25,358 bases of DNA from Octopus sinensis (Eukaryota): contig NW_021836215.1 of NCBI RefSeq assembly GCF_006345805.1, forward strand, positions 1 to 25,358. Direction: 5' to 3'. Position 1 is the first letter of the stretch; each line of letters begins with the position of its first letter. This document shows positions 2,570 through 25,358 of this stretch, in pieces. Position numbers and translations under genes: made by a program. The notes below the pieces were generated by a model. It saw nothing but the letters and a program-made list of their open reading frames with translations. It made no database searches and was not told the origin of the DNA.

Positions 2570-3095
2570 ACAATTCGTATTTTCTCTCGATACTCCTTCT
2601 CTACTATGTATTCTAATACAGTTTTCATCTTTACGGGGGGTTCCTACTTTTCTATTCCAGTGACCTGCAAGGAAAAAGAGAGTAGAGGCACGTATATCGT
2701 CTACAGCCACGGCGAGATTTGAGTAGAAATTTTCAACTTCTTCTGGACATTTTATTGATATATAGCCATTGTCGGTGCAAATACGTTGACAATTGTCATA
2801 AGTTTTTTTCCCAGCATTAGTTGTAAGATTGACATCCTGTCATTAATTCTCCAGCATTTGTGAGTTGAGTTTGCATAGCGTTTATTGATTGCAAATTTAT
2901 GTCCATAGTGTCTACATTCGAGTTTTAGTAGGATAATCTTATATGATCTAATAATCTCATCGAAATCATTGTTCAGCTTAGTTTCTTGAAGACAAGCTAC
3001 TGAAACTCCATAATGAATTAAGTCCTCAGTCAATTGTGTTCTTCGTAGTGGAGAGGAAATTCTTCTGACATTGAAAGTCATAAGTACGAGCTCTG
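2570..3095 (-). mobile_element. LINE (RTE-like) apurinic endonuclease domain fragment
   Basis: ORF 2752-3156 has MTFNVR, VACLQETKL and VNVFAPT. Manual translation continues with EVENFYSNL..AGHWNRKVG (GDFNAKVG-like) down to about 2570. Confidence 0.8.
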
Positions 3096-3535
3096 CAGGC
3101 TGGTGGAAAAAAACCGGTTTTGCAGTTACTAAGTTTTTTTGGCAGATAGCATTCAATTTTCCAACTGAATTGAACTCTTTGGAGTTTATTAGATTTATAA
3201 TTTTTTTTGTTTATAAAAAATTTCATTAATCGTTTAAAATTTTGAAGATTTAAATTTTTGCGTGTGAATAAAAAACCGGTTTGATTTATTGAATGATATT
3301 TTATTTGTTGAATTTTAAGTTTTATAAGCAAATGTTAAATGCAATAATTAAAGAAAAGATCCTTGCTCTTTTTGAGTTAAATTGGACGATAAAAGATATC
3401 GCAAAACATCTAAATACTTTAAAATCGACAATCAGAGATTTTTTTCGAAAATTCAAAAAATATGGAACTGCTGACAGGATTTCTGATTCCGGACGTCATA
3501 AAAAGCTTCAGAAAACAGACATTGAAATCCTATTA

Positions 3536-5783: not shown

Positions 5784-8395
5784 TGTGCAAAAGAGGGAAG
5801 TCACCAACTCAACTAAAATCAGGATGACTATGGAAGGAGGATGTTTGATAAAAAGAGATGGCCGACAAAATTGCTACATACTTCGAGTCCCTTTTCAGAA
5901 ATAACGATGAACACATATCTCAGTTTGCTGGAGATCCTAGAAGTTTAACTGTTTCATTACTATCACTGAGATGCAAACTGCTCTGCGGAAATTGAACAAT
6001 GGTAGTAGTTCTGGCATTGATGGTATTAATGAAGAACTTTTAAAATACTGACCAAACTCACTCGCTCATCAGTTATGCGACATACTAAACGGCATATTTA
6101 CGACACATACCGACGTTCCAGTTGGACAAGGAGTCCTAGTTCCTGTACAAAAACCAGGGAAGCCGGTTGGACCGGTAGAAAATCTCCGACCTATAATTCT
6201 CTTAACATCTCTACGAAAACTACTGTCGTTGATTGTCCTTTATTGAATATCCCCTATCGTGAACAAATTCTTGTATGTGACAAAGTGGATTCAGAAGAGA
6301 GAGGTCTGCGGCGGATATTGTATGGACACAAAGATGGATGTGTGCCACGACACAGAGGTTCAGAAAGGCGGTTCACGTACTAGGAATAGATCTATCAGGG
6401 CGTTTGACACTCTTCGCAGGGAAAGCTTATTCAGCTATTGGAAACATTCTTGGATGAGGAAAGTTTGAGAATGATTCGTTTCCTAGTTGCGAATACTGAT
6501 CTGGAGGTGTGGGTTGGCTCGGAGCACTCTTGTAAATTTAAAACACACATTGACACTCCAAAAGGTGACTTCTTATCTCCGATCTTATTCGTCATTTATC
6601 TGGGAGCTGCTCTTCATGATCTGAGAACTAAAATTGGCCCAACCACCATCATGGAATTAATATATGCGGACGACATTAATTTTATTTAGAAGAAATGAAT
6701 GATATCAGAATTGCAATTGACTACGCTCCTGAAGTATTTAGAAAGTGGTTTTTGAGAAATGAACGAACAAAAGACTGATTTCATTACAGTCAAACGAGAA
6801 AGTAAAGTTACTGACGAGATATGGAAGAGATCAAGAAAAGTCGGGTCACTGCTTGGTGACTAAAAAGATGTCAATCGAAGAAAGATACTGTCAACATTAG
6901 CACTGAAGAGGCTTAAATCGACAAGCTATACGCATCTCTCAAATCCTGTAAAAGTACGTTTGTACAATGCTTTCATCCTGCCCATTTTACTATACAACTC
7001 AAAAACATGGGGACTGAATCAGAACTGTATATAAAATCTCAATGCTTTTCAGAGAAAACAACTCAGGCCATTGTTGAAAATACACTATCCAATTAAGATC
7101 AAGAACCAAGACTTATACTCCGTTTTCAAAACAGAACAATTAGAAGCAACTATCACTAAGAGTCAATGAGGACTCTTTGGCCACATACTACGGATGGATT
7201 CCTCAGTTCCTTCCAATGACATCATGGAAACATACTTTCAATGCTCTGGGATTTCTCGAGTAGGCCACGGACAACACTACCACTAATCTTAAATAACGAC
7301 CTTAAGCATGTCGGATTGCTACTAGAAAATACAGACGATCTAGACCAGTGGTTCTCAAGAATTTTGAGCCAGGGGCCGCAAAAATCAAATTTTTTATTTA
7401 TAGGGGCCGCACATTTTTGGTCAACTTAATGAAGATAAAATATTTGTTATTTCAGGTTGAACTGAAGAAAATACATATGATTTTTGGGTACTTGTAGATT
7501 ATCAAAAAAATTTCCCAAAATTCAGTTAGAGCATTATTTCGTGCAGCATGAAATCTACAAGTACCGATTTTTGTTTTACTGTGTACATGCAATTTAGAGT
7601 TGCGTCTTATCGCCGCACATTTGTTATATCAATGAATGAAAGAATTTATAAACTACTTTGTCATATTTTCAAAATCTGGTACGATATTAGATGTCGAAAT
7701 CCGCAACATCTGATCTAGATGGATATCTGTTAGTTCATTGCGGTATTATTTCCTAATTTCAGTATCGTTACTTAGAGGCAACTTGTGTGCAATATCGAAA
7801 AAAGCGGGCGAACAACATTCCGATGCAAATATTTTGATTGCCGTTTTATATAATTCGCCATCAGAATAAGGCTTCATATTTTCAGCCAATAGGTAACTAA
7901 TTTTGTATGATGCCAGGTTAATATTAGACGAATATGTCCCACTTTTGAAAGTGGATGATCGCTTTAAATAATCTTCTTTCATTTGTTTTAGTTTTTCCGT
8001 CCGAGAAACACCAGTGAATTTGTCATAAAGAATAGAGTGGGAGCGGTAGTGCCGTTCGATTGTATACGTTTTTAAAGTTACAATAATAGAATTGCATATT
8101 AGACAAAAGCCTTTCCATTGACCTCAATAATGAAATATTTTTTTTCCCAGATGAATTTAAAAATCCCATTTTCCTTGGAAATTTTTCGAAAACGTTTAGA
8201 ATTCGACATCACAACAACAAATAAAAAAACGTGACAAAAAATAAAATATTTATAGAAACATAAGCCCCTCAATTAAATCCTAGGGGTCGCACTTGAGAAC
8301 TACTGATCTAAGACAGTCTACGAAAAATCGCAATCTCAAGAAGAGCATGAAGGTGTCTAACAGACAAAATCTTATGGGATGTGACACAGGCGACG
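5784..8395 (+). mobile_element. RTE-like LINE, RT and C-terminal region, decayed, split by hAT at 7346-8305
   Basis: Mosaic frames give KLNNGSSSGIDGINEELLK, NLRPIILL, GIDLS.AFDT, TPKGDFLSPILFVIYL, LIYADD and LYNAFILPILLYNSKTWGL. The frame resumes after the hAT as DLDSLRKIAISRRA*RCL. Confidence 0.85.
7346..8305 (-). mobile_element. Non-autonomous hAT element with transposase 5' remnant
   Basis: TIRs CAGTGGTTCTCAA (7346-58) / TTGAGAACTACTG (8293-8305), 12/13 match. TSD ATCTAGAC (7338-45) vs ATCTA(A)GAC (8306-14). Minus ATG at 8209 gives MSNSKRFRKISKENGIFKFIWE..KAFCLIC..ERHY (zinc finger), then ASYKISYLLAENMKPYSDGE..LPLSNDT (ORF 7746-7982). Confidence 0.9.
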
Positions 8396-9070: not shown

Positions 9071-10268
9071 ATGCTTAATTTACTCTTCTGTCAATTAATA
9101 GTCCTATTAAAATTTTCAATAGCTAGCGAATCCTCTGATCATTCTAAAAATAATTTTTTCGTAATTAATACGTGGGATTTTCCAGTAGCAAACGAAGAAG
9201 GTATTATTTAAATAATTAAAGACAGCTTATTTTATTCTAAAAAACGGGGGGACAGCACTCGATGCAGTAGAACAGGCATGTATTCAGTGTGAAGAAATGA
9301 AATGTGACCTCTCGGTCGGAATGGGTGGACAGTGTGACGAATCGGGAGAGTCGACATTGGATGCCATGATAATGGACGGGTAATCTATACCTTAATAGTA
9401 TTCTAGAAATACTCACAATGTAGGAGCTGTTGGTGGAATAAAAAGAATTAAAAAATCTATTTCTGTCGCTCGATTTGTTCTTGAGCGAACTACTCATTCA
9501 CTTTTGGTTGGAGAATCTGGTTGTTATCTTTTTAAATTTAATCAGCAACGTCATTTGCGATTTCGATGGGGTTTCAACCACAAGATCTACACACTAATAA
9601 TGTTCCATTTACATACATAAAAAATGGGAAGAAAATAATTGTCAACCGAATGCTTGGAAAGTTCAATTTTATAAAAATTATTTCCACAGAATGTGCATCC
9701 TGATCCATCCAAATCATGTGGGCCATATAGAAAGGCTGATAGGCTATCACATGATCATAAAAGCGAAAATATAGACTGGAAGATCTCTGGACATGATACA
9801 ATCAGCATAGTGGCCATGGATAAGAATAAGCAAATATTTGGAGCTACGTCGACAAATGGATTTAATCATAAAATTCCGGGGTTGAAAGGAATTTTTTTAT
9901 TGCATAGACGAGTTGGAGATTCACCTTTGCCTGGCTGTGGAGTATACGTAGACAACGAAATCGGGGGAGCAGGTGCAACAGGAGATGGGGACATTATGAT
10001 GCGATTTTCGCCGAGTTTTCTTGTGGTCGAATTAATGGCTACTGGAAACACGCCTAAAGATGCCTGTGAAATAGCCATTAAGAGAATTGCTAGATATTAT
10101 CCAAGTTTTAATGGTGCCCTCTATGCAGTAACAAATGCTGGTGTTCATGGTTTATATATTTTTATTTTAAAGTAAATAGGTGCTGCCTGTAGTGGATTTG
10201 ATGGAAAATTTACATATTGGTTTAGTGACAAGAATTCTAAGGAAAAATATGAAGTTAAATGCATTTAG
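9071..10268 (+). CDS. AGA: N(4)-(beta-N-acetylglucosaminyl)-L-asparaginase (aspartylglucosaminidase); 7 exons; one unexplained frameshift in exon 4
   Basis: Exons 9071-9200, 9226-9379, 9407-9519, 9546-9660, 9690-9880, 9908-10149, 10180-10268. Introns are GT-AG, 25/27/26/29/27/30 nt. The spliced protein has a signal-peptide-like start ([18 protein letters not shown]), then [44 protein letters not shown], the GHD-T autocleavage site (Thr codon 9798-9800), [28 protein letters not shown] and a terminal KCI*. Exon 4 is 115 nt where 113 or 116 is needed. Confidence 0.93.
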
Positions 10269-12559: not shown

Positions 12560-13003
12560 ATCGTAAAGAAGGTAAGCTGTACAAACAGGGAATACATAAA
12601 AGAAACGTTTATTCTAATATCAGAGGACAATCAAACCTACTGAGGTATAGGAAAATGTTGAACAGAAATATAAAAAACATGCAAATGATCTGAATTAGAA
12701 ATAAAACAGCTCATTTGCCAGAATTAACTAATGATTGACGAATTAATTAAAATATTGTAGAAGACTAAAACGGTCATTAATTAGCTTTTTATTTGTAATT
12801 TAATAGTAAATTGATTTTGGCCATATGGACATATGCGTAGCAATTCATAAACCCTGCTTTCATGCTACTGTAAAATGCTACAGGTTAAGAAAGTCAGGTC
12901 ATAAAAAATAATGGGGGTTGGTTAAAATGCAGCCTTCACTGGTTGCATGGGGCATAAAAAGAAAGCGCCTCTTTTTTAACACCAAAAAATTCAATTGAAA
13001 TGT
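12560..13003. repeat. Unclassified repeat X, copy 1 (site A empty; CRE insertion at site B)
   Basis: Shares TGATCTGAATTAG..CAGCTCATTTG..GAATTAACTAATGATTGACGAATTAATTAAAATATTGTAG..GGCCATATGG..GGTTGC..CATAAAAA..ACACCAAAAAATT with the other four copies. Confidence 0.9.
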
Positions 13004-13353
13004 TCCGACACTTTCTCCGCCAAGAATCTAATTGTCTCCGCTGCGGAACCGGGCTCAGTTGCAAAGCAGGCGGAACTAACAAAACAGAAGAAGTACCGGG
13101 TCCTGGCAAAGAATCATCAATTCACTGCAGTCGCGGTGGAAACCTCTGGAGTCATCGGCCCGCAGACGCTATCGTTTCTTCGCCGCCTTGGATCTAAGCT
13201 CGTGGTTGCCACGAAAGATCCCAACGAGTCGATCAGACTCTTTCAAAGGATCTCATTGGCCATCATGCGCGGGAATTGCCAGTCGATCCGCTGCGCATTT
13301 TAACCCTTTTCACTTTCTCTATTAGTATAAAATAAATTTAAATAAAAAAAAAA
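13004..13353 (+). mobile_element. 5'-truncated CRE-like retrotransposon (RLE C-terminus, 3' UTR, A-tail)
   Basis: ORF 12995-13303 reads CSDTFS..AE..KQKKY..FTAVAVETSG..FQRISLAIMRGNC. A-run at 13344-13353. Flanked by the 11-bp direct repeat AATTGAAATGT (12993-13003, 13358-13368). Confidence 0.85.
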
Positions 13354-13371
13354 TTTAAATTGAAATGTAAG

Positions 13372-14287
13372 TTCAAATAAGCCTAATATGCTCCGTCTCT
13401 AAAATTATGGAACGGATTGTCTTCACAAGGCTTTCGAACTTTGTAGAGGAATCAGATGCACTTGCAACGGAGCAGTTGGGTTTCCGACGAAAAAGATCCT
13501 GCAGAGATTGTTTCGAAGAACTCGAGAAAGCCATCTCGCATAGTCCTGCAAACAATATAGCGACTATTGCTATCTACCTCGATGTCTCAAAAGCTTTTGA
13601 CAGCGTATGGCACCTGGGCCCCTTGGAAAGTGTCGCCAAAATAAAACCCGAGTCTAGAACGGTCAATTGGCTGAAAAGCTATCTATCCATGAGGCGGTCA
13701 TACATACGATGTGGAAACCGTTTGTCGGAATTTGTCGATCTCAAAGGAGGGGTACCTAAAGGCTCGGTCTAGAGCCTTCTACTTGTTAATATTTACGTTG
13801 CTGATATTCAAAAATCGAAAGATCCTACCAGTCGTCTCATGATCTACTAATAACGGATGCTTCGTGGAGAAAAGACATCTCGTGAAGGAAATTAAAAGGA
13901 TACGTGACAAGAGTGGAAGAGTGGTGCATATCAAAAGGACTAACACTTGCAAAAGAAAAGTGCACCGCCACTTAGATTGCAAAACGAGGAGCTAAACGAA
14001 AACCGCCAAAAAACCTCCATGGGTTTACAGTAACGGAAAACCTAAAATATCTTGGAATTGAAGTTGGATCCAAGGGTTTTTACTCCAGATACATCGATTC
14101 GAGAAGAAGGAAATGCGCTTAAATTCTCAGAAGCATAATTCACTTCCACCTTTGTCCAGAAACATTTTTATATGTTTATAAAACGTGCATCGAACCATTG
14201 CTTACCTACGGGTTCGAGGGATGGTACCCTACTGCTGAGAGGAATGGCTTTATCGCTAAACTCGAAAAGACGAGATTATTAAAGAGA
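13372..14287 (+). mobile_element. APE-type (CR1/jockey-group) LINE RT fragment
   Basis: QISLICSVSKIMERIV, EQLGFRRKRS, YLDVSKAFDSVWH, WLKSYL, GVPKGSV, later KYLGIE and YKTCIEPLLTYG. Frameshifted. Confidence 0.85.
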
Positions 14288-14317
14288 ATTTGGTAGAATT
14301 CACTAATGATTCCGAAT
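14288..14317. repeat. Repeat X copy 2, left remnant ending at the target site
   Basis: ATTTGGTAGAATTCACTAATGATT is 22/24 identical to X (ATTTGCTAGAATTAACTAATGATT). It is followed by CCGAAT, a decayed GACGAAT. Confidence 0.7.
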
Positions 14318-15116
14318 CCAATCTTTACGTACATCTTTCGACCAACACCGCTGGGCCTGCTTTGAGACGGCATGTCGCCCTCACGCGGAGCCTGGCTAAA
14401 TGCCACTCCACTGCCTAGCATTGGGAACCTCTGGACTGCGAGTCCGTACGCACTGGAATCTGTTTACGTCTCGGTCTTCGCCTATGCGAGCCACATGTCT
14501 GCCGCTGTGGCGCGAAAATCTGTCGCTTTGGATTGCACGCTCTATCGTGCAGACGCAGTGCTGGCCGCATCCCGCGTCACGCCGCCTCTCTTAACGACCT
14601 TATCAGGAGAGCCCTGGAAGTCGCCGGAATCCCCTCCCTGCTTGAACCCACTGGGATCGATCGGGGGGACGGAAAAAGGCCTGACGGGATAACTGTGTTT
14701 CCTTTCAACAGGGGGAAGCCTCTCACCTGGGATGCCACGTGTGGTGGACTCTTTCTCGCCTCAGAACCTGCTGATGTCGGCCTCCGCTCCTGGATCTATT
14801 GTCACACCGCGGAATGCAAAAAGATGCGGAAGTACTCCTCACTTACGGAGAAGTTCCAATTCCTTCCATTCGCGGTTGAGACTTCCGGTTCCTGGGCAGT
14901 AAGGCAATCAGCTTCGTTCAGGAGATCGGGTCCCGCATGTCTGCCATCACAGGCGACGCCCGCGAATCGAGATGGTTTTTCGAGCGGATATCCCTTGCGA
15001 TAGTACGCTCAATTCTTTCTCGATCGCGTCGGCTTCCCGCACTTGAAGCTTTTAATTAATTAACTTGTAGTTATTGGTTGGTTTTCATCAAAAATATAAA
15101 ATAAAAAAAAAAAAAA
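14318..15116 (+). mobile_element. 5'-truncated CRE-like retrotransposon (CCHC zinc knuckle + RLE + poly-A) inserted in repeat X site A
   Basis: DQHRWACF..GAWLNA.P, LRLGLRLCEPHVCRCG..HALSC..GRIPRH, EPTGIDRGDGKRPDG..WDATC, AECKKMRKY, FAVETSG, ISLAIVR. A14 tail at 15103-15116, followed by TTGACGAATTAATT. Confidence 0.9.
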
Positions 15117-15425
15117 TTGACGAATTAATTAAAATATTGGAGCAGACTAGAACTGTCATTGATTAGCTTGTTTACTTATAATTTAAAGTAAATAACGTTT
15201 GGCCATATGGCCATATGGATAGGAATTTAAAAAACCTGCTTTCATTCTACTGTAAAATGCTACATGCTAAGAAAGTCAGGTAATGAAACAAGTGAAACAA
15301 ATGAGGCCATGTCGTAAATGCAACCCTCAGTGGTTGCATGGGGTATAAAAAGGGAACGCCTCTTTTTTAACACCAAAAAATTCAATTTGCATGGAAGTTC
15401 ATTTTTCAAACTTCAAATTAATTAT
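15116..15425. repeat. Repeat X copy 2, right part
   Basis: Resumes at ATTGACGAATT. Contains TGGCCATATGGCCA, ATGCAACC-N6-GGTTGCAT, TATAAAAA and TTCATTTTTCAAACTTCAAATTAA. The variable middle is shared with copy 1. Confidence 0.9.
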
Positions 15426-17090
15426 TTAAGCTAAAAATAAAAAAATTAACCAACAAATAAATTTAATAACTTACAAACTGAGCAATTTTTATTTTAAATT
15501 GAGTGAAAATGATTATCATAATCTTAAGCTGCTGATGATCGAGAAGACGTTGCATATTTATATGCAAAAAATTCTTCAATATCCAACGGATCAAAAATAT
15601 CTGTCCATTCTATTGGTATTTCATCTTCTAATTTATTTTCACGTTATCATGATATAGAATTTCGAAACAATTTGAAATGGTATGTTGCGATACTATCTTC
15701 TGATTAATTTTTCACGTCATAATTATTTAGAATTCCGAAACAATTTGAAATGGTATGTTACGATGCATCTTCCCATGCCATTTTAACAAATATCACAACA
15801 TTTTTTAATGTGATATTAATATTTATTGATGTTCTGAAAAATCCATTAAATATGCAAATTTGTGCTTAAGCGTTTTAAAATTTTTTATGATTTTCAGGTC
15901 CATTGGCTGGACCAAGCCTGTACGATTTCGCAATATAAACATGATTTCAATATTGGACAAATTTTTTGGTATGCAATGTGAAGGAAAGTTATCTAGAATA
16001 AGCAAAATTTGTTTTTTTTGTAATTTTAGATTAAAATCAAAGTTTAATAGCCAATCTATGAAGATTTTTCCAGTCATCCAGGCACGCTGGGAGCTATAAT
16101 ATGGAATAAATGAAACGTAATCGTAGTTTTTAAAACATCGGGGTTTTTTGGGCTTTGATATCATCACAGGTTTTAATTTATGAGTTCCATTCATATTCGT
16201 GCAAAGCATTATGGAAACACGATCCTTGAAATTTTTGTGACCTTTAAATCGGTTACAACAAATGGATTTTGAAGGAATGATTTTATAAAAAATCCAGTTT
16301 TATCTAAGTTGTAAATTTGATCATCATTATATCTCTGTGAAACTTCACGAAATTTAGAAAGAAAAGACTCAATGTCAACGGGATTGTCTGTTTTCATTTC
16401 TTCATACAATTTTCGCATTTAAAATCCATGTCGTTTTTTAAATTTTCCAAAAAACTATTTGAGTTTTTAAAATTTACTAGTTTAAGTTGTTGCGTAAAAA
16501 CATAGCTTTACTAGAAATTAAGGCATCATTAAGAAAACCGCCTAAATCTAAATAAGATACCTATATACTCAATCAAATCCATCGCTCAACGAATTTTTCA
16601 TCAGGTTTGGGAAACTTAAGATTTGCTTTTTTGAGGCTAGATTGTGTATCTTGTTATCTTTGAGAAGAGAATCTTTTTTCAAAAGAATGTTGTTGATTTT
16701 TTTCGAGAAATTTTTTTATTAAACAAAAAAGAAAATCTTTCGGCCAAAAATTGAGGACAGTGGTTCTCAAACTAGGGTACGCGAAAAATGTATTTAATTT
16801 TCGGCACCATTAAATGAATTTTGGTGTAGAATGATATCACAATGTCACAACATTGGATTTTATATAATAGAATCTTTGATTTTGTTTCCGACTACATATC
16901 TCTGCGAACAGAGATTTTCATCGTTGTTTAGTTTAAAATCAGTTCATCGTGCAAGGCTGAATGTTGATCGTGATATTCGTGTGACATTCGTCAAAGAATC
17001 CAGAACTCGATAGATTAGTTGTTGATAAACAACACCATTCATCTCATTATTAAATAATTTTTTTATTAAATTTTTAAAAAATCTATAAAG

Positions 17091-18467
17091 CAGACGTCAC
17101 CAACTACGGCCCGCGGGCCGGATCCGGCCCGCGCACTATTTCGAGATATTCAATTAATACCTTAATAATTAACTTAAATAAAAACTTTAATTAAAAAATT
17201 AAACTATTTTGCAAGATTTAATTCGAAAAAAACTTATCAGCATTAACGTAAATTTTTCTTTGTTGCTATGTCTAATATGAAAAGAAAGGTTGACCGCGAA
17301 TGCCGTGTATTCAATAAATTATGGGAATTGAAGTATTTTTTTGCGAAAGATGAATTAAAGCAGAAAGCTTATTGTTTAATATGCCACGAACATCTCTCTG
17401 TTATGAAGGAGTATAACATTCGACGTCATTATGAAACGAATCATGCTCCGATATATTCCAAGTACACTGGAAAGCTACGTGAGGATAAAGTTGAATCACT
17501 GAAACGCACTTTACAAATTCAACAAGGCCTTATAAAAAAAAATTTTGAAAATAATGAAAATGTAACAAGAGCTGGATACGAGATAACGAAAATTATTTCA
17601 CAACACGGGAAACCCTTTAGTGATGGGATGTATATCAAAAATTGCATTATTGAAGCAGTTAATTGTTTGTGCCCACTAAATTCTTCCTTATTTGATGGAA
17701 TAAGTTTGTCGGCGAGTTCTGTATCACGGAGAACTGAAGAGCTTGGGAAAAATATATATTTACAAGTTATTCGAGTCACAACTTGGAGTACGTCAGTTTT
17801 CACACTTTTCTTGTTTTAAAAGTTTTTGTGAGGCAAACTGTAATGAGATCGACATTTTTCCAAATTGGAATTATCAAAGAATAAAACATCATTTTTTTAC
17901 ATAAGTTTTCTGAACTTGACAAAATTGAAAGCGATATAATTTTGTTCGAAAATCCATTTTCTTGTAATGTTGAAAATGTTCAACATGAATTACAATTAGA
18001 AGTTATTGACTTACAATCAAATGAACAGCTCAAAGATTGTCACAGACGGACCAAACTCGCTGAGTTCTACGAAATCTCAAGGATGATGAGTTTCCGAGAC
18101 TAAAGAATTTTGCGATAAAGATGATTTCTATATTTGGCACAACTTACCAATGTGAGCAAACGTTTTCGAGGATGAAATATTTAGTCTTCCCATCGTGCAA
18201 GATTGACTGACGGACACTTAAAATCAATTCTCATGATAGGATGCAGCAATTTAAAACCAAATATTGATGAACTTATCAAAAAAGATTACAGTTCCATAGC
18301 TCTCATTAAAATTTTTGTTTACTTTATTTTTGTTTAAATTAGTTTTTTATTGTAAAAACAAACTTATGAATTTCTAATAAATTATAATCCTATGCACGTG
18401 CTCCGGCCCGCGTTCATTGTGTTGGGGTCAATCCGGCCCGCGAGTGCAAAAAGTTTGGTGACCCCTG
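17091..18467 (+). mobile_element. SPIN/GTF2IRD2-like hAT element, internally deleted
   Basis: Exact 8-bp TSD CTATAAAG (17083-90, 18468-75). Imperfect TIRs CAGACGTCACCAAC vs GTTTGGTGACCCCTG. Subterminal GGCCCGCG repeats. Confidence 0.9.
17268..18309 (+). pseudogene. hAT transposase retaining the N-terminal zinc finger and C-terminal dimerisation domain, catalytic core deleted
   Basis: ORF 17268-17819: KRKVDRECRVFNKLWELKYFF..CLICHE..KEYNIRRHYETNH..KPFSDG. Later: LQLEVIDLQSN..FGTTYQCEQTFSRMK..RARLTDGHL..SSH* (TAA 18307-09). Confidence 0.85.
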
Positions 18468-18785
18468 CTATAAAGGATACGCGAAAAATTATTTAGATGG
18501 CAAGGGGTATGCAAGGCAAAAAAGTTTGAGAACCACTGATTTAGGAGATTCACATACGTGATGAACCTGTTTTAAAAAATTTATTGTTTATAAATTACCA
18601 AAAGTCATAAAAAATTAAGACTAATCCATCTCTATTTTCTACATTGACAAAATGTTAGACAATTTTGCAACAATAGTAAATGGATCTCCATATGCTTGTT
18701 TGAACCTTATTAATCTAGGCGAAGGATTGATCCCAGAATGCATTTGAATGCGAGTCCTTTAAGTAATTAAAATATAATACAATAT

Positions 18786-19512
18786 CATGCAAATGATCTG
18801 AATTATAAAAAACAGCTCATTTGCTAGAATTAACTAATGATTAACGAATTAATTAAAATATTGTAGCAGACTATAACTGTCATTGATTAGCTTTTTATTT
18901 GTAATTTAATAGTAAATTGTAAATGGCCGCATGGCCATATGGATAGTAATCCATAAACTCAGAATTCAAATCACAGGAACAGGAAATGAAAATGCTACCC
19001 TCGGTGGTTGCGAGGCATAAAAAGGAAAAGCCTAATTTTTGACAACAAAAAATTAAATTGGAATGGAAAGTGTTCTAAAACAATTGAAGCATCAATTCAT
19101 TTTTCAAACTTCAAATTAATAATATTTAGTTTTTAAAATTTTTGACCGTTTGAAATTTTGAATGTCAGGTAAATGAGAACTTAAACAATCTAACAAATCT
19201 CTCATCTTTCGTTCGAAAAAAAGAAGGCTTGGGAACCAGTACTTTTCTGACAAAAACAGGACTGTCACTGTCACTGTAAACAAAGCAAGGTTCTTACAAA
19301 AAATCGAGTACGAGGTTTTTGAATGACTTAGTTGTAGAAGAATGCTATACAAGCTGATGCACGTGAGGATTTCTTCTCTGGTGATAAGGATGCCTGAGAT
19401 TCCTTTTAGTAGTTTCGGGGAAAGTGGGTCTTTTTAAGGCTTCTAACGATTCAGAAGATACACAGAAGACTGGTTGGCATTCCACAGTCATGTTCTACAA
19501 ATATGATAGCAT
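18786..19512. repeat. Repeat X copy 3 (site A empty, reads ATTAACGAATT); long copy
   Basis: Collinear with copy 5 from CATGCAAATGATC through ATGTTCTACAAATATG, with high identity by eye. Confidence 0.9.
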
Positions 19513-19599
19513 AGTTGTCATGTAAAAGGGTATCGAAACTTTTTTTTGAATAACGCAATGAGCTTGTGTTTCTGTAAGAATCAAATTTTCCAATTTCAC

Positions 19600-19975
19600 A
19601 CATTCGGAAAACAAGCTTTGGATACAGAAAATTGCATATTTGGTTTTCTATGTACGCGAAACTTAATAGATTTTCATAATTTTTCAAGGAAAATATCAAA
19701 CTGTATTTATTTTAAATGAAAAACTAATGACATTAAAACGAAAAATCGAATTTTGGAAGGCTTCCGTTAATAAAAATAACATTTTATGCTTTGCCCATTT
19801 GCACAATATCTGGATGAATCAAAATGTGCATTGAATGCTACAGTTCTCCGAAAAATCGAAGATCATTTGGATATTTTGAATGATAACATTCGGAAATATT
19901 TTTCGGATATATTTGAGGACAGTTGGGTTTAAAATACATTCAATATTGAAGTTTTGACATCAGAATACAATTCAA
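19600..19975 (+). mobile_element. hAT (Buster/ZBED5-like) transposase internal fragment (not in ORF track)
   Basis: Manual mosaic translation: WIQKIAYLV..AKLN..QGKYQTVFILNEKLMTLKRKIEFWK..NNILCF..IEDHLDILNDNIRKYFS..WV*NTF. Confidence 0.75.
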
Positions 19976-20019
19976 AAGAGATCCCTTTTTAATTTTTGAA
20001 GAGCATGCATCTCAAAATA

Positions 20020-21395
20020 TCTAGCTGATTTGAGGATACAGTTGTCGACAATAACTCCTAACATTATAGAGGAGGCGATGTTGCCGTAATTAAACACATA
20101 AACGGAAAATGGACTTTCTTAGACGATTTTTTAGATAACTATTATATTTGCAAAAAAAGTATCATAGTCCATGTAATTAAAAGCTGCAATATCCTCGTTG
20201 GGTGTTAACATATCTTCAAATAAACTTCTAAATAGTAATGCGGCTTTAAATACTAAAATAGTTGATTACAATTTGTTTTCATTCGGGGGACACTCGTATT
20301 ATATTTATTTTGTATACCGAAACTACAATACTTCTATGAAAATCTTCAAAAATGACCATGACGGATATTTATTTATTCCAAACTATGCATTGGAAAATTG
20401 TGCTATACAAAGTAAAATAATTATTTTATACCGAAATGTGATAAACTCGAGTGTGTTTACGTTGGGATCACCCAAGAGCAGAACAATTTTACGACAACCA
20501 AAGAAGATTTAGCGGTATTTGATCACTAAATTTTATAAGACGTACCTTCCCTGGGGTTCTGGTTATCTAAAAGTGAAATTTGCGTAATAAGAGGTGATGC
20601 CGACGGTGAGTTCCAAACAAGAGATTGCAATACTGAAAAATTGCAATACTTATTCCCTGTTTTTGAAAATAAATTGATAAAAAATACTGAAAAACACATT
20701 ATTTGTGAAACAGGAAGTTTTATTTTTATCAATCTCCAAGACAAAGTTGCGCCGGAAGCACCCTCGACAGCATGTAATTCATAGAAATTGAGTGACTAAC
20801 GATTAGTATTCATTGATAAAATACTGGAATATGACGGATAAAATTTAGTCTATTTAACATTAATACGACGCTGTCTGTTGCCAAAACAATTTGTAGTACA
20901 TTGGGAGAAGACCTCTTTGTTCCTCGCAATGAAAAGGAAAATTACGTTGTTTCTGGTTAATAGTCATTTTGTCATGTAAAAGATAATATGGAATTAACTA
21001 TTGGATTAAACTTTAAACAAAAGAACGTCAAGAATGCGTTTCTTCCTGGAGACGGTATCAAGAATGTAATTTCTTGAATGAATTTTTGTAGAATTATAAC
21101 AATTGGAAAATATGATATTCTAATTTGGATACTAATCAAAGTTGTGTGTATATGAAAATCGCAACTGGAATGTGGAAAAACGATGTTTGTAGGAATGCTT
21201 CATTTGTATGTCGGGGACAAAGTAGTATACAATCTACGATAATTGCTCAAACAATTTTTTGGGTCTCTTTATGTGAAACAGTTTCTAGAGTCACAAACTA
21301 GAGCTTACTCATTTATATTTGGCTCTAAAAAATATGTAATGTTTGGTTATCGCAAGACTTTTTACGAAGCAGTACGACTGTGTTTTAATTATTAA
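20020..21395 (+). pseudogene. Multi-C-type-lectin-domain (CTLD) gene, mannose-receptor-like array of at least four modules, micro-introns, pseudogenised or mis-assembled
   Basis: GT-AG introns at 20159-20183, 20515-20539, 20956-20982 and 21066-21091; degenerate ones at about 20412-20434 and 20714-20740. Splicing joins INGKWTFL..YYICKK; FSFGGHSYY..GYLFIPNYALEN..VYVGIT..TYLPWGSGY(fs)KSEICV..GEFQTRDCNTE..IICET; TLSVAKTICSTLGEDLFVPRNEKEN..TIGLN..NYNNWKI*YSNLDTNQSCVYM..TGMWKNDVCRNASFVC; and FGSKKYVMFGYRKTFYEAVRLC. Several stops and frameshifts. Confidence 0.8.
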
Positions 21396-21411
21396 TCACC
21401 TTGTTCACTAT

Positions 21412-22436
21412 TTTATTATTATTATCTAATTAAAATCCAGATCTTCAGGATTTCTTTCTTCGCTTGGAAGAAGATTTTCCATAAACTTCCTTTATTTTCT
21501 ATTTCTGCGTCAATGATTTTATTCACTGAGTGTCCTCACGACATGCCAGCTCCGCAAGTTGATTGGCGGCAGAGCATACTCCTCGTTGTCTACCTTCATC
21601 CATGTCTGTGCTCGATAAGCATACTCTTTAGCGTCCTCTTCAGCACAACCGACTGGATGTATGTCCTCGTTCCTTCGTCAATGGATAACTTGTCCATATG
21701 ACTTTTAAAGAACTTTGAAACAACTCCATCCCATGCCAAGACAATTGGAATAATCTTCACTTTTGCTTAATAGAAAACCGACAGTTCGCTTGCAAGCAGG
21801 TCGTATTTGTGAAATTTCTCTACTTAACTTGCTTTAAACGGTCTTGCAAAGTAATTTCCACTTTGATTAAATGAATTAATTTTTTCCTTTGTCATAAACC
21901 AAAATATCAGGTTTATTGAATTGGACTTTCGTTTCAGTCATAATTGACGTGTCAACTCTGATTTCGACATTTTGGGTCGACATTATTGACACAACCGAAT
22001 GTTCTTTCAATTTCCTGCTTCGTTTAATTCCATACATACGACACAAGTAAAGATGAATACACTTTACCACTTCGTTGTGTCTTCGGAGATAATCACTGTT
22101 TAGCATCCTACCACACCGAGTGGCTAGATGGTCAACAGTCTGCCTGTTTTTTTCCAATGGATGTATTGGGATCCCGTGTATGCAAAAAACAAATTCCCAT
22201 CTTGCAAAAGATAGTACAATGCTTCGCTCCGTGGACTATTGTTCCCTTTCGATAGCCATTGCAAAGAAGTAGATATGTCAACATCTGATTCCTTTATACA
22301 TTTGAACATCATTGAGTGTAGTGATTTACAGTTGATTCGGTTAAGCAAGAGTTTCCTTTGTGCGTCCTTCAGTAACTCAATGGTCAGATTTTCCCCGCCG
22401 ACAGCTGCATATTTATCTCACATCGATACTAAATGA
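21412..22436 (-). mobile_element. R4/Dong-like non-LTR retrotransposon 3' fragment (CCHC + RLE)
   Basis: LQWLSKGNNSPRSEA..LQD, TVDHLATRC..YLRRHNEVVKCIHL, NKPDILVYDK, ..AWDG..SHMDKL..YIQSVVLKRTL. Ends in (TAA)4 (+ strand TTA x4, 21413-21424). Confidence 0.85.
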
Positions 22437-22444
22437 ATTTTTAA

Positions 22445-23870
22445 CAACAACACCATTCCACGGGTATGGAAAATTGGGAAAATTATCACGAAATTGAAAC
22501 CACATAAACCAGCAGCCGACCCATCATCACACAGACCAATCACACTTTTGTACACCACATAAAAAATAAACGGCTAAACAAAATATCTCATAAACTTCCA
22601 ATTAGCAAAATCTAACATGGCTTCGGACAATATCATTTAACGACAACTCTACTCACAAAAATGACACAAACAAAATCAAACGGATTTAACAAAAAATTCT
22701 TCCCTTCGGGAAATATTAATCACCCTAGATCTAAACAAAGCTTTTGACTTCATTCCGAGACTCTCACTAATAAAAAAATCATTAATACAAATATCGATAA
22801 TAACTCAAAACGATGGCTATTCAACTACATCAGTGGGAAAAAAAGTTTATGTACAATTCAGCATAAAACGCTCAAATACACGCATCCTTCCCAATAAAGT
22901 ACCTTAGGGCTCTGTCCTATCCCCTACACTTTTCAACGCTTACCTAAGTGACATTTTTACACCACCCGAAAATGTATTTCTGTTCCTATACGCAAATGAT
23001 ATTACGATCACATCATCAAACAAAAATTCAATGGCAGCATGTCGCCAAGTTCAACCATTCATTGATACCCTGTATAACTGGATCACTTTAAACGGGCAAT
23101 TCCTATAAAAATCATCAACCACTCTTCTAACAGTACAAGAAAACAAAATTTCACTCCGACAATCAAAATCAACAATATCTAAATTCCCCACACAAAAACA
23201 GTCAAAATACTCTGGATAACGTACGATATCTCCTTATCATTTCGCCAACACACAAATTCAAATGCAAAATGAATGCTTTCCGCTCACTCTTCAGAACAGA
23301 TTTTGGACAAAACAACGAATGCCTAATACTCCTATACAAACAGTACATTCTTCCAATATTGGACCATGCAAGTCCATCATGGGCGCCTCTGTTGTCAAAA
23401 ACACTTCTTCAGAAACTAAAATCAATCCAAAACCAGCACTCAAAATCATTAAGAGCTATATGAAGTCTCAGACCGTCCATATGCATATGGAAACCAGCCT
23501 GATCTAACTTGCAGACCATTTCGACATCTGTGGAACCTAATTCCTTGCTTCAGCAAATATGATCAAAAACCACCAAAGTCACAATCTTACAACACCAACC
23601 CCTGACAGAAACATCAAAAACACACCAGCACTCCACTACTGCCGAATACTAAACTCATTCTCCAACAAAACATTATCGGAAATAAAAGAACTAAATCCTC
23701 CTTAAACGCACTAACCACAAACAATATCCTCAACAATCATCCCCAAAAATAAACACAGCTGAAAAGGATCTCAGCAGCAAGATCGGGTCGAACTCCCAAA
23801 TTTCGCTGTGGGCATCATCCTTACTTCTCGAATATCAAAACAAACTGGATAAGGATGTCGATCCGTCAAG
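22445..23870 (+). mobile_element. APE-type LINE (jockey/I/L2-group) RT and 3' region, heavily decayed
   Basis: IPRVWKIGKII..KPHK..SHRPITLL, LDLNKAFD, WLFNYISG, VP*GSVLSPTLFNAYLSD, YANDITI, LYKQYILPILDHASPSWAP, FRCGHHP. Confidence 0.85.
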
Positions 23871-23877
23871 TTCAATC

Positions 23878-24270
23878 TGATCTGAATTAGAATAGAACAG
23901 CTTATTTGACAGAATTAACTAATTATTGACGAATAATTTATTATAAATGAAAATTGTTAAAAAATATAGCTATTAAGTACTAGCTCGCAAAATTGAAAGA
24001 CATTCCCGCGTAAAATTATTGAAATATTGTAGCAGACTAAAATTGTCATTGATTAGCTTTTTACTTGTTATTTAATAGTAAATTAAGAGTGGCCATATGG
24101 CCATATGCATATAATCTATAAACTAGGACTACATACCACGGAAAAAGCATATAAATGACACTTGAACATAAAAGCGACCTTCAGTGGTTGCGGGGCATAA
24201 AAAGGAAGAGCCTCATTTTCACACCAAAAAATTAAAATGGCACGAAAAGTTTTAAAAATTTTTGACCGTT
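23878..24270. repeat. Repeat X copy 4 (site A filled; third variant of the middle segment)
   Basis: TGATCTGAATTAG..ATTGACGAAT[insert]..AAATATTGTAGCAGACT..TGGCCATATGGCCA..GCGACC-N6-GGTTGC..CATAAAAAGG..TTTTTGACCGTT. Confidence 0.85.
23935..24010 (-). mobile_element. ~76-bp insert in X site A, probable extreme 3' end of a CRE-like element
   Basis: Absent from empty copies 1 and 3. The minus strand begins CGCGGGAAT (RGN; identical 9-mer at 13268-76). With one indel it reads RGN.LSILRAST*, similar to the ..RGN..AS.* termini at 12287 and about 15010-15045. No clean poly-A; the right TSD is decayed. Confidence 0.5.
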
Positions 24271-24385
24271 CTCAATGACTCAGCTGCCCGAACTGCAAGT
24301 TGATACTCATTGACAATTTTCTATTCATAAATCTAACATGCGAGCTTTTTTTGAGTATAATTATGCATGATTTGAGTGGTCAGTC

Positions 24386-25358
24386 GATCATGAATAGAAG
24401 GCACGTTGTCACAAACGGGGAATATAGATAAGAAACTTTTATTCTAATATCTAAGCAGATGGAAAAATTTTGAACAGAAATATAAAAACATACGAATGAT
24501 CTGAATTAGAATAAATCAGCTCATTTCCTAGAATTAACTAATGATTGACGAATTTTTTTTTTGAACCGATATGGTTTAATTATGAAATGTAAAAAGATAG
24601 CTAAGCTAATTAAAGGCCTCACGAGACCCACGCCAGTTTCGCGAATGGCGAAGCCGTTCCCTCGGATCACAGCATTGACGAATTAATTAAAATATTGTAG
24701 CAGACTATAACTGTCATTGATTAGCTTTTTACTTGTAATTTAATAATAAATAATAACTGGCCGCATGGCCATATGGATAGCAATCCATAAACTCAGAATT
24801 CAAATCACACCAATAGGAGAAGCAATTGAAAATGCTACCCTCGGTGGTTTCGAGGCATAAAAAGGCAAAGCCTCATTTTTAACACCAAAAAATCAAATTG
24901 GAATGGAAAGTGTGCTAAAACAATTGAAGCATCAATTTATTTTTCAAACTTCAAATCAATAATATTTAGTTGTTAAAATTTGTGACAGTTTGAGATTTTG
25001 AATGTCAGGTCAGTGAGAACCTAAACAATCTGACAAATCTTTTATCTTTCGTTTTAAAAATGAGAAGGCTTGGGAACCAGTACTTTTCTGACAAAAACAG
25101 GACTGTCACTGTGAACAAAGCGATGGTTCTTACAAAAAATCGAGTACGAGGTCTTTGAATGACTTATTTGAAGAAGAATGCTATACAAGCTGATGCACGT
25201 GAGGATTTCTTCTCTGGTGATTAACGATGCCTGAGATGCCCAGTTTAGCGAGTTTCGGGGAAAGTGGGTCTTTTAAGCCTTCTAACAATTCAGAAGATAC
25301 ACCGAATACTGCTTGGCATGCCAAAGTCAATGTTCTACAAATATGGTAGCGTGCGGTA
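24386..25358. repeat. Repeat X copy 5 (longest; site A filled; runs off the window)
   Basis: Aligns with copy 1 from about ATC.TGAA.AGAAGG..ACAAAC.GGGAATA and with copy 3 to the window end. Confidence 0.9.
24555..24673 (-). mobile_element. 119-bp retro-insertion (CRE-like 3' end) in X site A
   Basis: Exact 11-bp TSD ATTGACGAATT (24544-54, 24674-84). T10 run at 24553-62 is a poly-A tail on the minus strand. The minus strand starts AVIRGNGFAI, the conserved A(I/V).RGN terminus of the RLE ORFs in this window. Confidence 0.8.

Follow-up and report, generated by a model that had tools for sequence, protein, structure and literature searches.

We analysed a contig of 25,358 nt from the Octopus sinensis assembly GCF_006345805.1 (NW_021836215.1, here C12686; the whole stretch is called the window) and searched the entire assembly, which comprises 2.72 Gb in 13,516 contigs. 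The window is repeat-rich and contains five copies of an interspersed repeat, X, together with a glycosylasparaginase-like gene (9200-10200) whose introns measure 27-45 nt. We describe here one position within X, site 1, which is marked by the 11-mer ATTGACGAATT and has repeatedly received the 3' ends of long interspersed nuclear elements (LINEs) encoding a restriction-like endonuclease (RLE). With at most one mismatch allowed, the 11-mer occurs seven times in the window against 1.8 expected. An earlier note on this DNA had proposed that a single site in X was struck independently by different inserts in both orientations, and the genome-wide search bore this out with seven events, five of them clean.

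The host of this DNA is probably not the octopus. The short introns, the G+C content of 35%, the abundance of repeats and the absence of both X and the RLE families from the chromosome-scale scaffolds suggest that the contig is DNA of a dicyemid kidney parasite. These features match the genome of Dicyema japonicum, in which the G+C content is 36.7%, repeats make up 49% and introns average 38 bp (PMC6736024). This adds to the signs of parasite DNA in many unplaced contigs of the octopus-labelled assembly.

Repeat X and the insertions at its site 1

Comparison with 30 other loci showed that X reaches at least 200 bp leftward and ~670 bp rightward from site 1, at least 0.9 kb in total, which is larger than the earlier note had assumed. 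About 80 copies are present genome-wide, all on unplaced contigs, and whole copies are ~78-83% identical to copy 3 of the window, which served as the reference.

We searched the genome with four patterns (the site together with its left or its right flank, and each of the flanks by itself), each with up to three mismatches, paired the matches by coordinate and then examined the sequence of every unpaired junction. This gave the tabulation of filled and empty X copies that the earlier note had suggested: among 79 right flanks, site 1 is intact in 61 and disrupted exactly there in 18. The 18 disrupted flanks reduce to the seven events listed in Table 1, of which E1-E5 are clean, and E6 and E7 are rearranged. 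All the clean inserts are short, 5'-truncated 3' ends, and they come from five different RLE-encoding LINE families (A-E). A full-length element was not found at site 1 in any of the ~80 X copies; every orphan flank was explained by a short insert. Several apparent orphan flanks (C9530:7376 with its two duplicates, C8702:859075, C12598:211420 and C12957:16880) were rejected, these being diverged or otherwise truncated copies in which the site is intact.

Within the window, copies 1 and 3 are empty as had been noted, the empty allele of copy 3 lying one nucleotide away from the 18839-18849 given before and reading ATTAACGAATT. The insert of copy 2 (E1) is 96-99% identical to dispersed family A copies, and its plus strand and A14 tail had been recognised correctly. 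Its left flank had been read as a 22/24 match to X ending ATTCCGAAT, but this match is partly microhomology and the target-site duplication (TSD) is ~3 nt, not 10-11. The sequence of family A itself at the truncation point of E1 is ...ATCCCGAATCC, and the CCGAAT in the left flank of copy 2 is continuous with it and is therefore element sequence.

The minus-strand insert of copy 5 (E3), with its poly-A, length and exact TSD, is as first described: its tail reads T9 on the plus strand, and the exact 11-mer flanks it on both sides. In copy 4, the minus-strand insert starting with RGN (E4) was also confirmed, but it is slightly longer than the ~76 bp claimed. It encodes a C-terminal RGNCLSILR...stop and is also present in paralogs at C8597:393288-393366 and C6388:4083-4159.

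Among the rearranged events, the join of E6 consists of 15 nt of filler followed by the 5' end of a minus-strand insert resembling family E. The hAT fragment fused in E7 is related to a hAT-type element of the window (16750-18540) having terminal inverted repeats (CAGTGGTTCTCAAAC...) and a decayed transposase that contains a Spin-doc/BED-like zinc finger; fragments related to this element are also found at 536-2018 and 19560-20100 of the window. Another candidate, C6388:3066 (L132, G000:C6388:2790-3100), resembles an insertion of family D, 45 nt rightward of site 1, but was not counted. There, the family D tail keeps X positions 10 to 1 and is fused to X at a second TCAAT, and the sequence upstream is an unrelated transposon; it looks like a rearranged derivative of an E4-type insertion, such as a microhomology-mediated rearrangement between neighbouring X copies would leave.

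The junctions fall on two bonds. In the plus-strand events E1 and E2, the poly-A meets ATTGAC, that is, bond 0|1, whereas in the minus-strand events E3, E4 and E5 the junction follows ATTGACGAAT(T), that is, bond 10-11|12. The exact 11-bp TSD of E3 ties these two bonds together. The earlier note had held that the same two nicks, 10-11 bp apart, can prime either orientation. The two fixed priming bonds support this, but the second-strand break is variable, lying 3-11 nt from the first nick (TSDs of 3, 3-6, 11, 3 and 4-5 nt for E1-E5, respectively), so only the priming nicks are fixed.

Table 1. Copies of X, insertions at sites 1 and 2 and associated fragments. Positions without a contig or locus name refer to the window.
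Feature	Position	Strand	Details
X copy 1, left part and core	12560-12997	+	site 1 (12734-12744) empty
RLE-LINE 3' fragment with poly-A, site 2 of X copy 1	12998-13350	+	TSD ~14 nt (AATTCAATTGAAATG / ATTTAAATTGAAATG)
Decayed reverse transcriptase (RT) fragment of another LINE	13380-14293	+	takes the place of the left part of X copy 2
X copy 2, left stub	14294-14311	+	ends ...AATGATT
E1, family A, X copy 2	14312-15115	+	804 bp; A14; TSD ~3 nt (ATT)
X copy 2, right part	15116-15470	+	starts with ATTGACGAATT
X copy 3	18752-19512	+	uninterrupted; reference; site 1 (18840-18850) empty
X site 2	~19051-19066		~215 bp downstream of site 1; ~30-45 nt past the TATA-like box
X copy 4, left part	23878-23934	+	ends ATTGACGAAT
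E4, family D, X copy 4	23935-24013	-	~79 nt; tail ...AAATT; TSD ~3 nt (AAT)
X copy 4, right part	24014-24253	+	
X copy 5, left part	24411-24554	+	left TSD copy at 24544-24554
E3, family C, X copy 5	24555-24673	-	119 bp; A9-10 tail; exact 11-bp TSD
X copy 5, right part	24674-25358	+	right TSD copy at 24674-24684; continues past the window end
E2, family B	C8597:403379	+	~230 bp; A13; TSD 3-6 nt
E5, family E	C9530, C10580, C9947	-	~100 nt; T8-9; TSD 4-5 nt
E6, rearranged	7 duplicated copies		right part of X begins at position 9; left flank not X
E7, rearranged	C8713, C9729 (2 copies)		site 1 fused to a hAT fragment via microhomology
Site 2 insert	L002:1785-2133	-	350-bp element; TAA-type tail; TSD AAATTGGAAT
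Site 2 insert	L015:1378-1501		family D end

Independence of the insertions

An RT fragment fused to the left stub marks the X copy hosting E1, and the same junction of RT fragment and X was found in paralogs on C8597, C9300 and C12469. This composite is occupied by E1 in the window and by E2 on C8597, and its site is empty on C6388, C9300 and C12469. Site 1 is also intact in the probable counterpart of X copy 5 on C6388. E4 is common to all three related segments (the window, C8597 and C6388; 92-97% identical) and therefore predates their split. The related segments may be paralogs or co-assembled strains of the parasite; the insertions are separate events either way.

These observations bear on the simplest alternative, namely that the pattern reflects chance, or a single ancestral insertion copied along with X. 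X does multiply by segmental duplication, and E4, E5 and E6 are each found in three to seven duplicated copies. However, the inserts come from different families and vary in length and strand, and the paralogs of a given X copy are either empty or differently filled, which refutes a common ancestral insertion and upholds the earlier claim that the inserts were not co-duplicated with X. The inserts at site 1 are thus independent.

As for chance, tblastn detects RLE fragments at a density of about one per 10 kb in the sequences flanking X. With this density tripled to allow for short fragments, we estimated that ~0.01 3' junctions are expected per bond and orientation over the 79 copies, whereas two to three were seen at each of the two bonds. 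We saw ~12 disruptions of the ~300-bp core of X: seven fall in the 12-bp window of site 1, three in a second site (site 2), one 20 bp upstream of site 1 and one, due to a DNA transposon, at TTAA. By our own arithmetic, a uniform spread would give the clustering at site 1 with a probability of ~1e-5. We give chance and common ancestry practically no weight, and conclude that the hot spot is real, shared by several families and bidirectional.

Site 2 is a second hot spot and holds three independent insertions, in window copy 1, L002 and L015, and it is empty in the copies on C12460 that are paralogous to the one carrying the window insertion. The disruption 20 bp upstream of site 1 (L020:1126-1500, in G000:C6343) is an RLE-LINE 3' fragment without poly-A, flanked by a 10-bp TSD, TTTGCCAGAA.

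The inserting families and their targets

We found a full copy of family A at L073:3072-6080, which has a single open reading frame (ORF) of 1002 aa. The ORF comprises a PHD-like finger, whose match falls below Pfam's threshold, an RVT_1 domain (E=1.4e-15) and, at the C-terminus, a CCHC motif followed by a putative PD..D..E..K-type RLE region. In this region, the motifs CxC...C...H...C, RH, KRPDG, WDATC and E..K..KY were read by eye; no Pfam model or structure matched over it. The ORF gave no Exo_endo_phos match indicative of an apurinic/apyrimidinic endonuclease (APE) domain, and its best PDB matches were R2 proteins, at a weak level (E=5e-5). Copies of family A (at least 391 first-look candidates) are 94-99% identical, and the family is young. 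Family C has at least 405 first-look candidates, and an extended member of it encodes the same C-terminal domain as family A. A longer member of family D in L015 reads RGNCLSILR...stop as E4 does, and the coding segment of family E gave at least 255 candidates, most of them on contigs that lack X. The RLE domain overall gave at least 4,584 candidates at first look, and the best 150 of these are all on unplaced contigs. The families display the hallmarks of target priming, namely a 3' tail, 5' truncation and a TSD.

Two further arrangements concern these elements. At L073 (G000:C12878:3000-10000), intact full-length family A elements lie head to tail within an 84-bp satellite (877-2943 and 6138-7001), and on one 19.6-kb contig the poly-A of four family A copies joins the same position of the satellite monomer (ATCTCAAGTACC...). 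The one such copy whose 5' end was read has an apparent TSD of ~20 bp. The array may represent a home for master copies that is specific to the satellite, or the product of tandem amplification. In the window, a fragment of an APE-like endonuclease (2752-3156) is followed directly downstream, also on the minus strand, by a C-terminal RLE fragment (2178-2561); the segment 2178-3156 probably represents two nested elements, and it may instead be a dual-endonuclease (Dualen-like) element.

The earlier note had supposed that the inserting lineages target X in the way that CRE/SLACS or R2 target their sites. The junctions outside X did not support this. Of the family A 3' junctions sampled, 1/30 lies in X, and of those of family C 1/22, in both cases the window's own; relatives of family D elsewhere have ordinary poly-A ends in varied flanks, and families D and E reside mostly elsewhere. 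Over 35 distinct 3' junctions, the sole bias was a TT after the poly-A (13/35 against a background of 21%, p=0.02), which is weak. The 3' untranslated regions of the inserts had nothing in common with X beyond AT-rich words of 12 nt. The families are not X-specific, and site 1 of X is a hot spot rather than a dedicated target.

It could still be argued that at least one RLE lineage has a true specificity for X, comparable to that of R2 for 28S ribosomal DNA (rDNA), with the short inserts as by-products. Exact junction positions are indeed reused in both orientations, and family D, its own window copies aside, shows one more X event (at site 2) in ~36 matches, far above the share of X in the genome. 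However, none of the ~80 copies holds a full-length element at site 1, the remaining sampled junctions in X amount to 0/29 for family A and 0/21 for family C, and five different families are involved. With specificity of the R2 or Tx1L type, most copies, full-length ones included, would occupy one target in one orientation, and this is not what the families do; we regard a dedicated X lineage as improbable.

The elements had been called CRE-like. CRE elements have C2H2 fingers at the N-terminus, compared with the PHD-like finger of family A. The CRE clade is also described as mostly target-specific, whereas families A, C and D have varied sequences at their 3' flanks. Elements of the HERO clade encode an RLE and insert mostly non-specifically (PMC4640811), and the PHD-like finger, RT and RLE of family A together with the dispersed insertion seen here appear to fit HERO better than CRE.

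Origin of the hot spot and comparison with known systems

We think it probable that the hot spot at site 1 arises from target-primed reverse transcription by several related RLE-LINE families, which are young and weakly specific and each encode a PHD-like finger, an RT and a C-terminal CCHC motif with an RLE. Each event would be an ordinary act of target priming. A nick in the bottom strand just 5' of ATTGAC (primer end ...GTCAA(T)) would lead to the plus-strand inserts, and a nick in the top strand after GACGAAT(T) (primer end ...GACGAA(T)(T)) to the minus-strand inserts; we propose that both orientations arise because either nick can come first. The break of the second strand would be loose, 3-11 nt away and often resolved via microhomology, and the products would all be short, 5'-truncated copies, dead on arrival. 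We infer that the endonucleases of the elements themselves make both nicks, and that the extended sequence or the local DNA or chromatin context of the X core, not the 11-mer alone, creates the hot spot.

Several points weigh against this proposal. Outside X, junctions of the 11-mer with poly-A or poly-T were not enriched (69 against 92 in the control and 124 against 132), in a test of low power because the parasite-like compartment hosting the elements is small. Around site 1, we found neither a stable hairpin nor strong two-fold symmetry to account for the nick positions; small AT palindromes do occur nearby, for example AATTAATT at the top-strand nick. The count of independent empty sites is uncertain, since X copies have multiplied through segmental duplication or represent haplotypes assembled together, and the rearranged events E6 and E7 are no more than consistent with the model. 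The search for the 11-mer outside X also returned C8703, C8596 and C8577:56561 as possible extra site 1 events, which were dismissed as chance matches.

The conservation of X could point to a different source of the hot spots. The best conserved part of the repeat is a core of ~150 bp (18810-18958) that includes site 1, in which the per-column agreement among copies is 93-95% against 61-72% in the adjoining stretches; this suggests constraint or gene conversion. The core contains two tandem CATATG boxes (GGCCATATGGCCATATGG), and a second conserved block (19000-19060) carries a TATA-like box at 19016-19025. Integration might therefore be tethered, with a protein or a chromatin mark on a promoter-like X core setting the hot spots, for example through a PHD-like finger that reads a histone mark. 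The place of site 1 in the conserved core, the position of site 2 just downstream of the TATA-like box and the PHD-like N-terminal finger of the ORF all favour this. On the other side, X matched no RNA gene in Rfam at either the gathering score or E up to 10, a tRNA search of X gave no match and no RNA sequencing run holding X was found; the PHD match is below threshold, and junctions at exact single bonds are better explained by the reading of sequence. We consider tethering unlikely. A more elaborate version, which we consider quite unlikely, is that the X core is a functional, promoter-like element of the dicyemid to which PHD-finger RLE LINEs are guided, as to other promoters, by chromatin or a bound factor. 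The spacing of the nicks by one helical turn would then reflect a protein-DNA complex held in position, rather than recognition of sequence by the endonuclease.

The rearranged events raise the question of capture independent of the endonuclease. Site 1 could be fragile, or be nicked by a topoisomerase, a replication barrier or another nuclease, with LINE cDNAs captured during repair. E7, in which an unrelated hAT fragment is joined via microhomology, the filler DNA of E6 and the involvement of several families are in line with this. LINE capture at breaks usually proceeds without poly-A and TSD, whereas the clean events show both poly-A and TSDs (3-11 nt), as is characteristic of target priming that depends on the endonuclease. 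Capture thus appears very improbable as the source of the hot spot, and target priming at preferred nicks continues to be the reading that we favour.

RLE-type LINEs are being engineered for site-specific gene insertion, and how weakly specific elements choose their landing sites is a practical question. Site 1 of X offers a natural substrate of ~40 bp that was chosen independently by at least five related elements, with the bonds known on both strands and with empty X paralogs to serve as controls, so that nicking specificity and strand choice can be tested directly in vitro. It also indicates that "non-specific" HERO-like LINEs can show sharp local hot spots.

The use of another interspersed repeat, not an RNA gene, as a LINE target recalls Tx1L of Xenopus, which inserts in the DNA transposon Tx1D. 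Tx1L differs in its APE endonuclease and in being a dedicated specialist with a single orientation, whereas the X families encode an RLE and insert in both orientations. The Tx1 clade has been named as target-specific (PMC4640811). The earlier note had not been aware of a description of such a multicopy target other than rDNA; however, microsatellites, small nuclear RNA (snRNA) genes and other transposons are already known LINE targets (PMC4640811). R2 and R1 are found in 28S rDNA, CRE/SLACS and NeSL-1 in spliced-leader genes and Utopia in U2 snRNA genes (PMC4640811). With these elements, which are of the RLE type except for R1, the events at X share the reuse of an exact position in a multicopy sequence. 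Nearly all copies of such elements reside in the target, in one orientation and with full-length masters included, whereas a few percent at most of the copies studied here are in X, none of them full length and in both orientations.

The HERO elements appear closer, being RLE-encoding and mostly non-specific (PMC4640811). In EhLINE1 and EhSINE1 of Entamoeba histolytica, insertion likewise involves an RLE and is dispersed, with hot spots that arise without targeted insertion (PMC1635306). The RLE of EhLINE1 nicks GCA|TT, and the presence of this motif is not enough to predict an insertion (PMC1635306). The two systems are alike in preferring a short motif with an A|T step for the nick, GCA|TT there against GAA|T(T) and CAA|T here, and in both of them additional local context appears to be needed. 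The pattern at X, with recurrent independent insertions at one bond and a short motif that was not predictive in our low-power test, is that of an EhLINE1-type hot spot. Unlike EhLINE1, the X hot spot, which is known from sequence alone, is common to at least five LINE families and lies in the conserved core of a multicopy repeat, and its junctions imply that both strands prime, at bonds ~10-11 bp apart.

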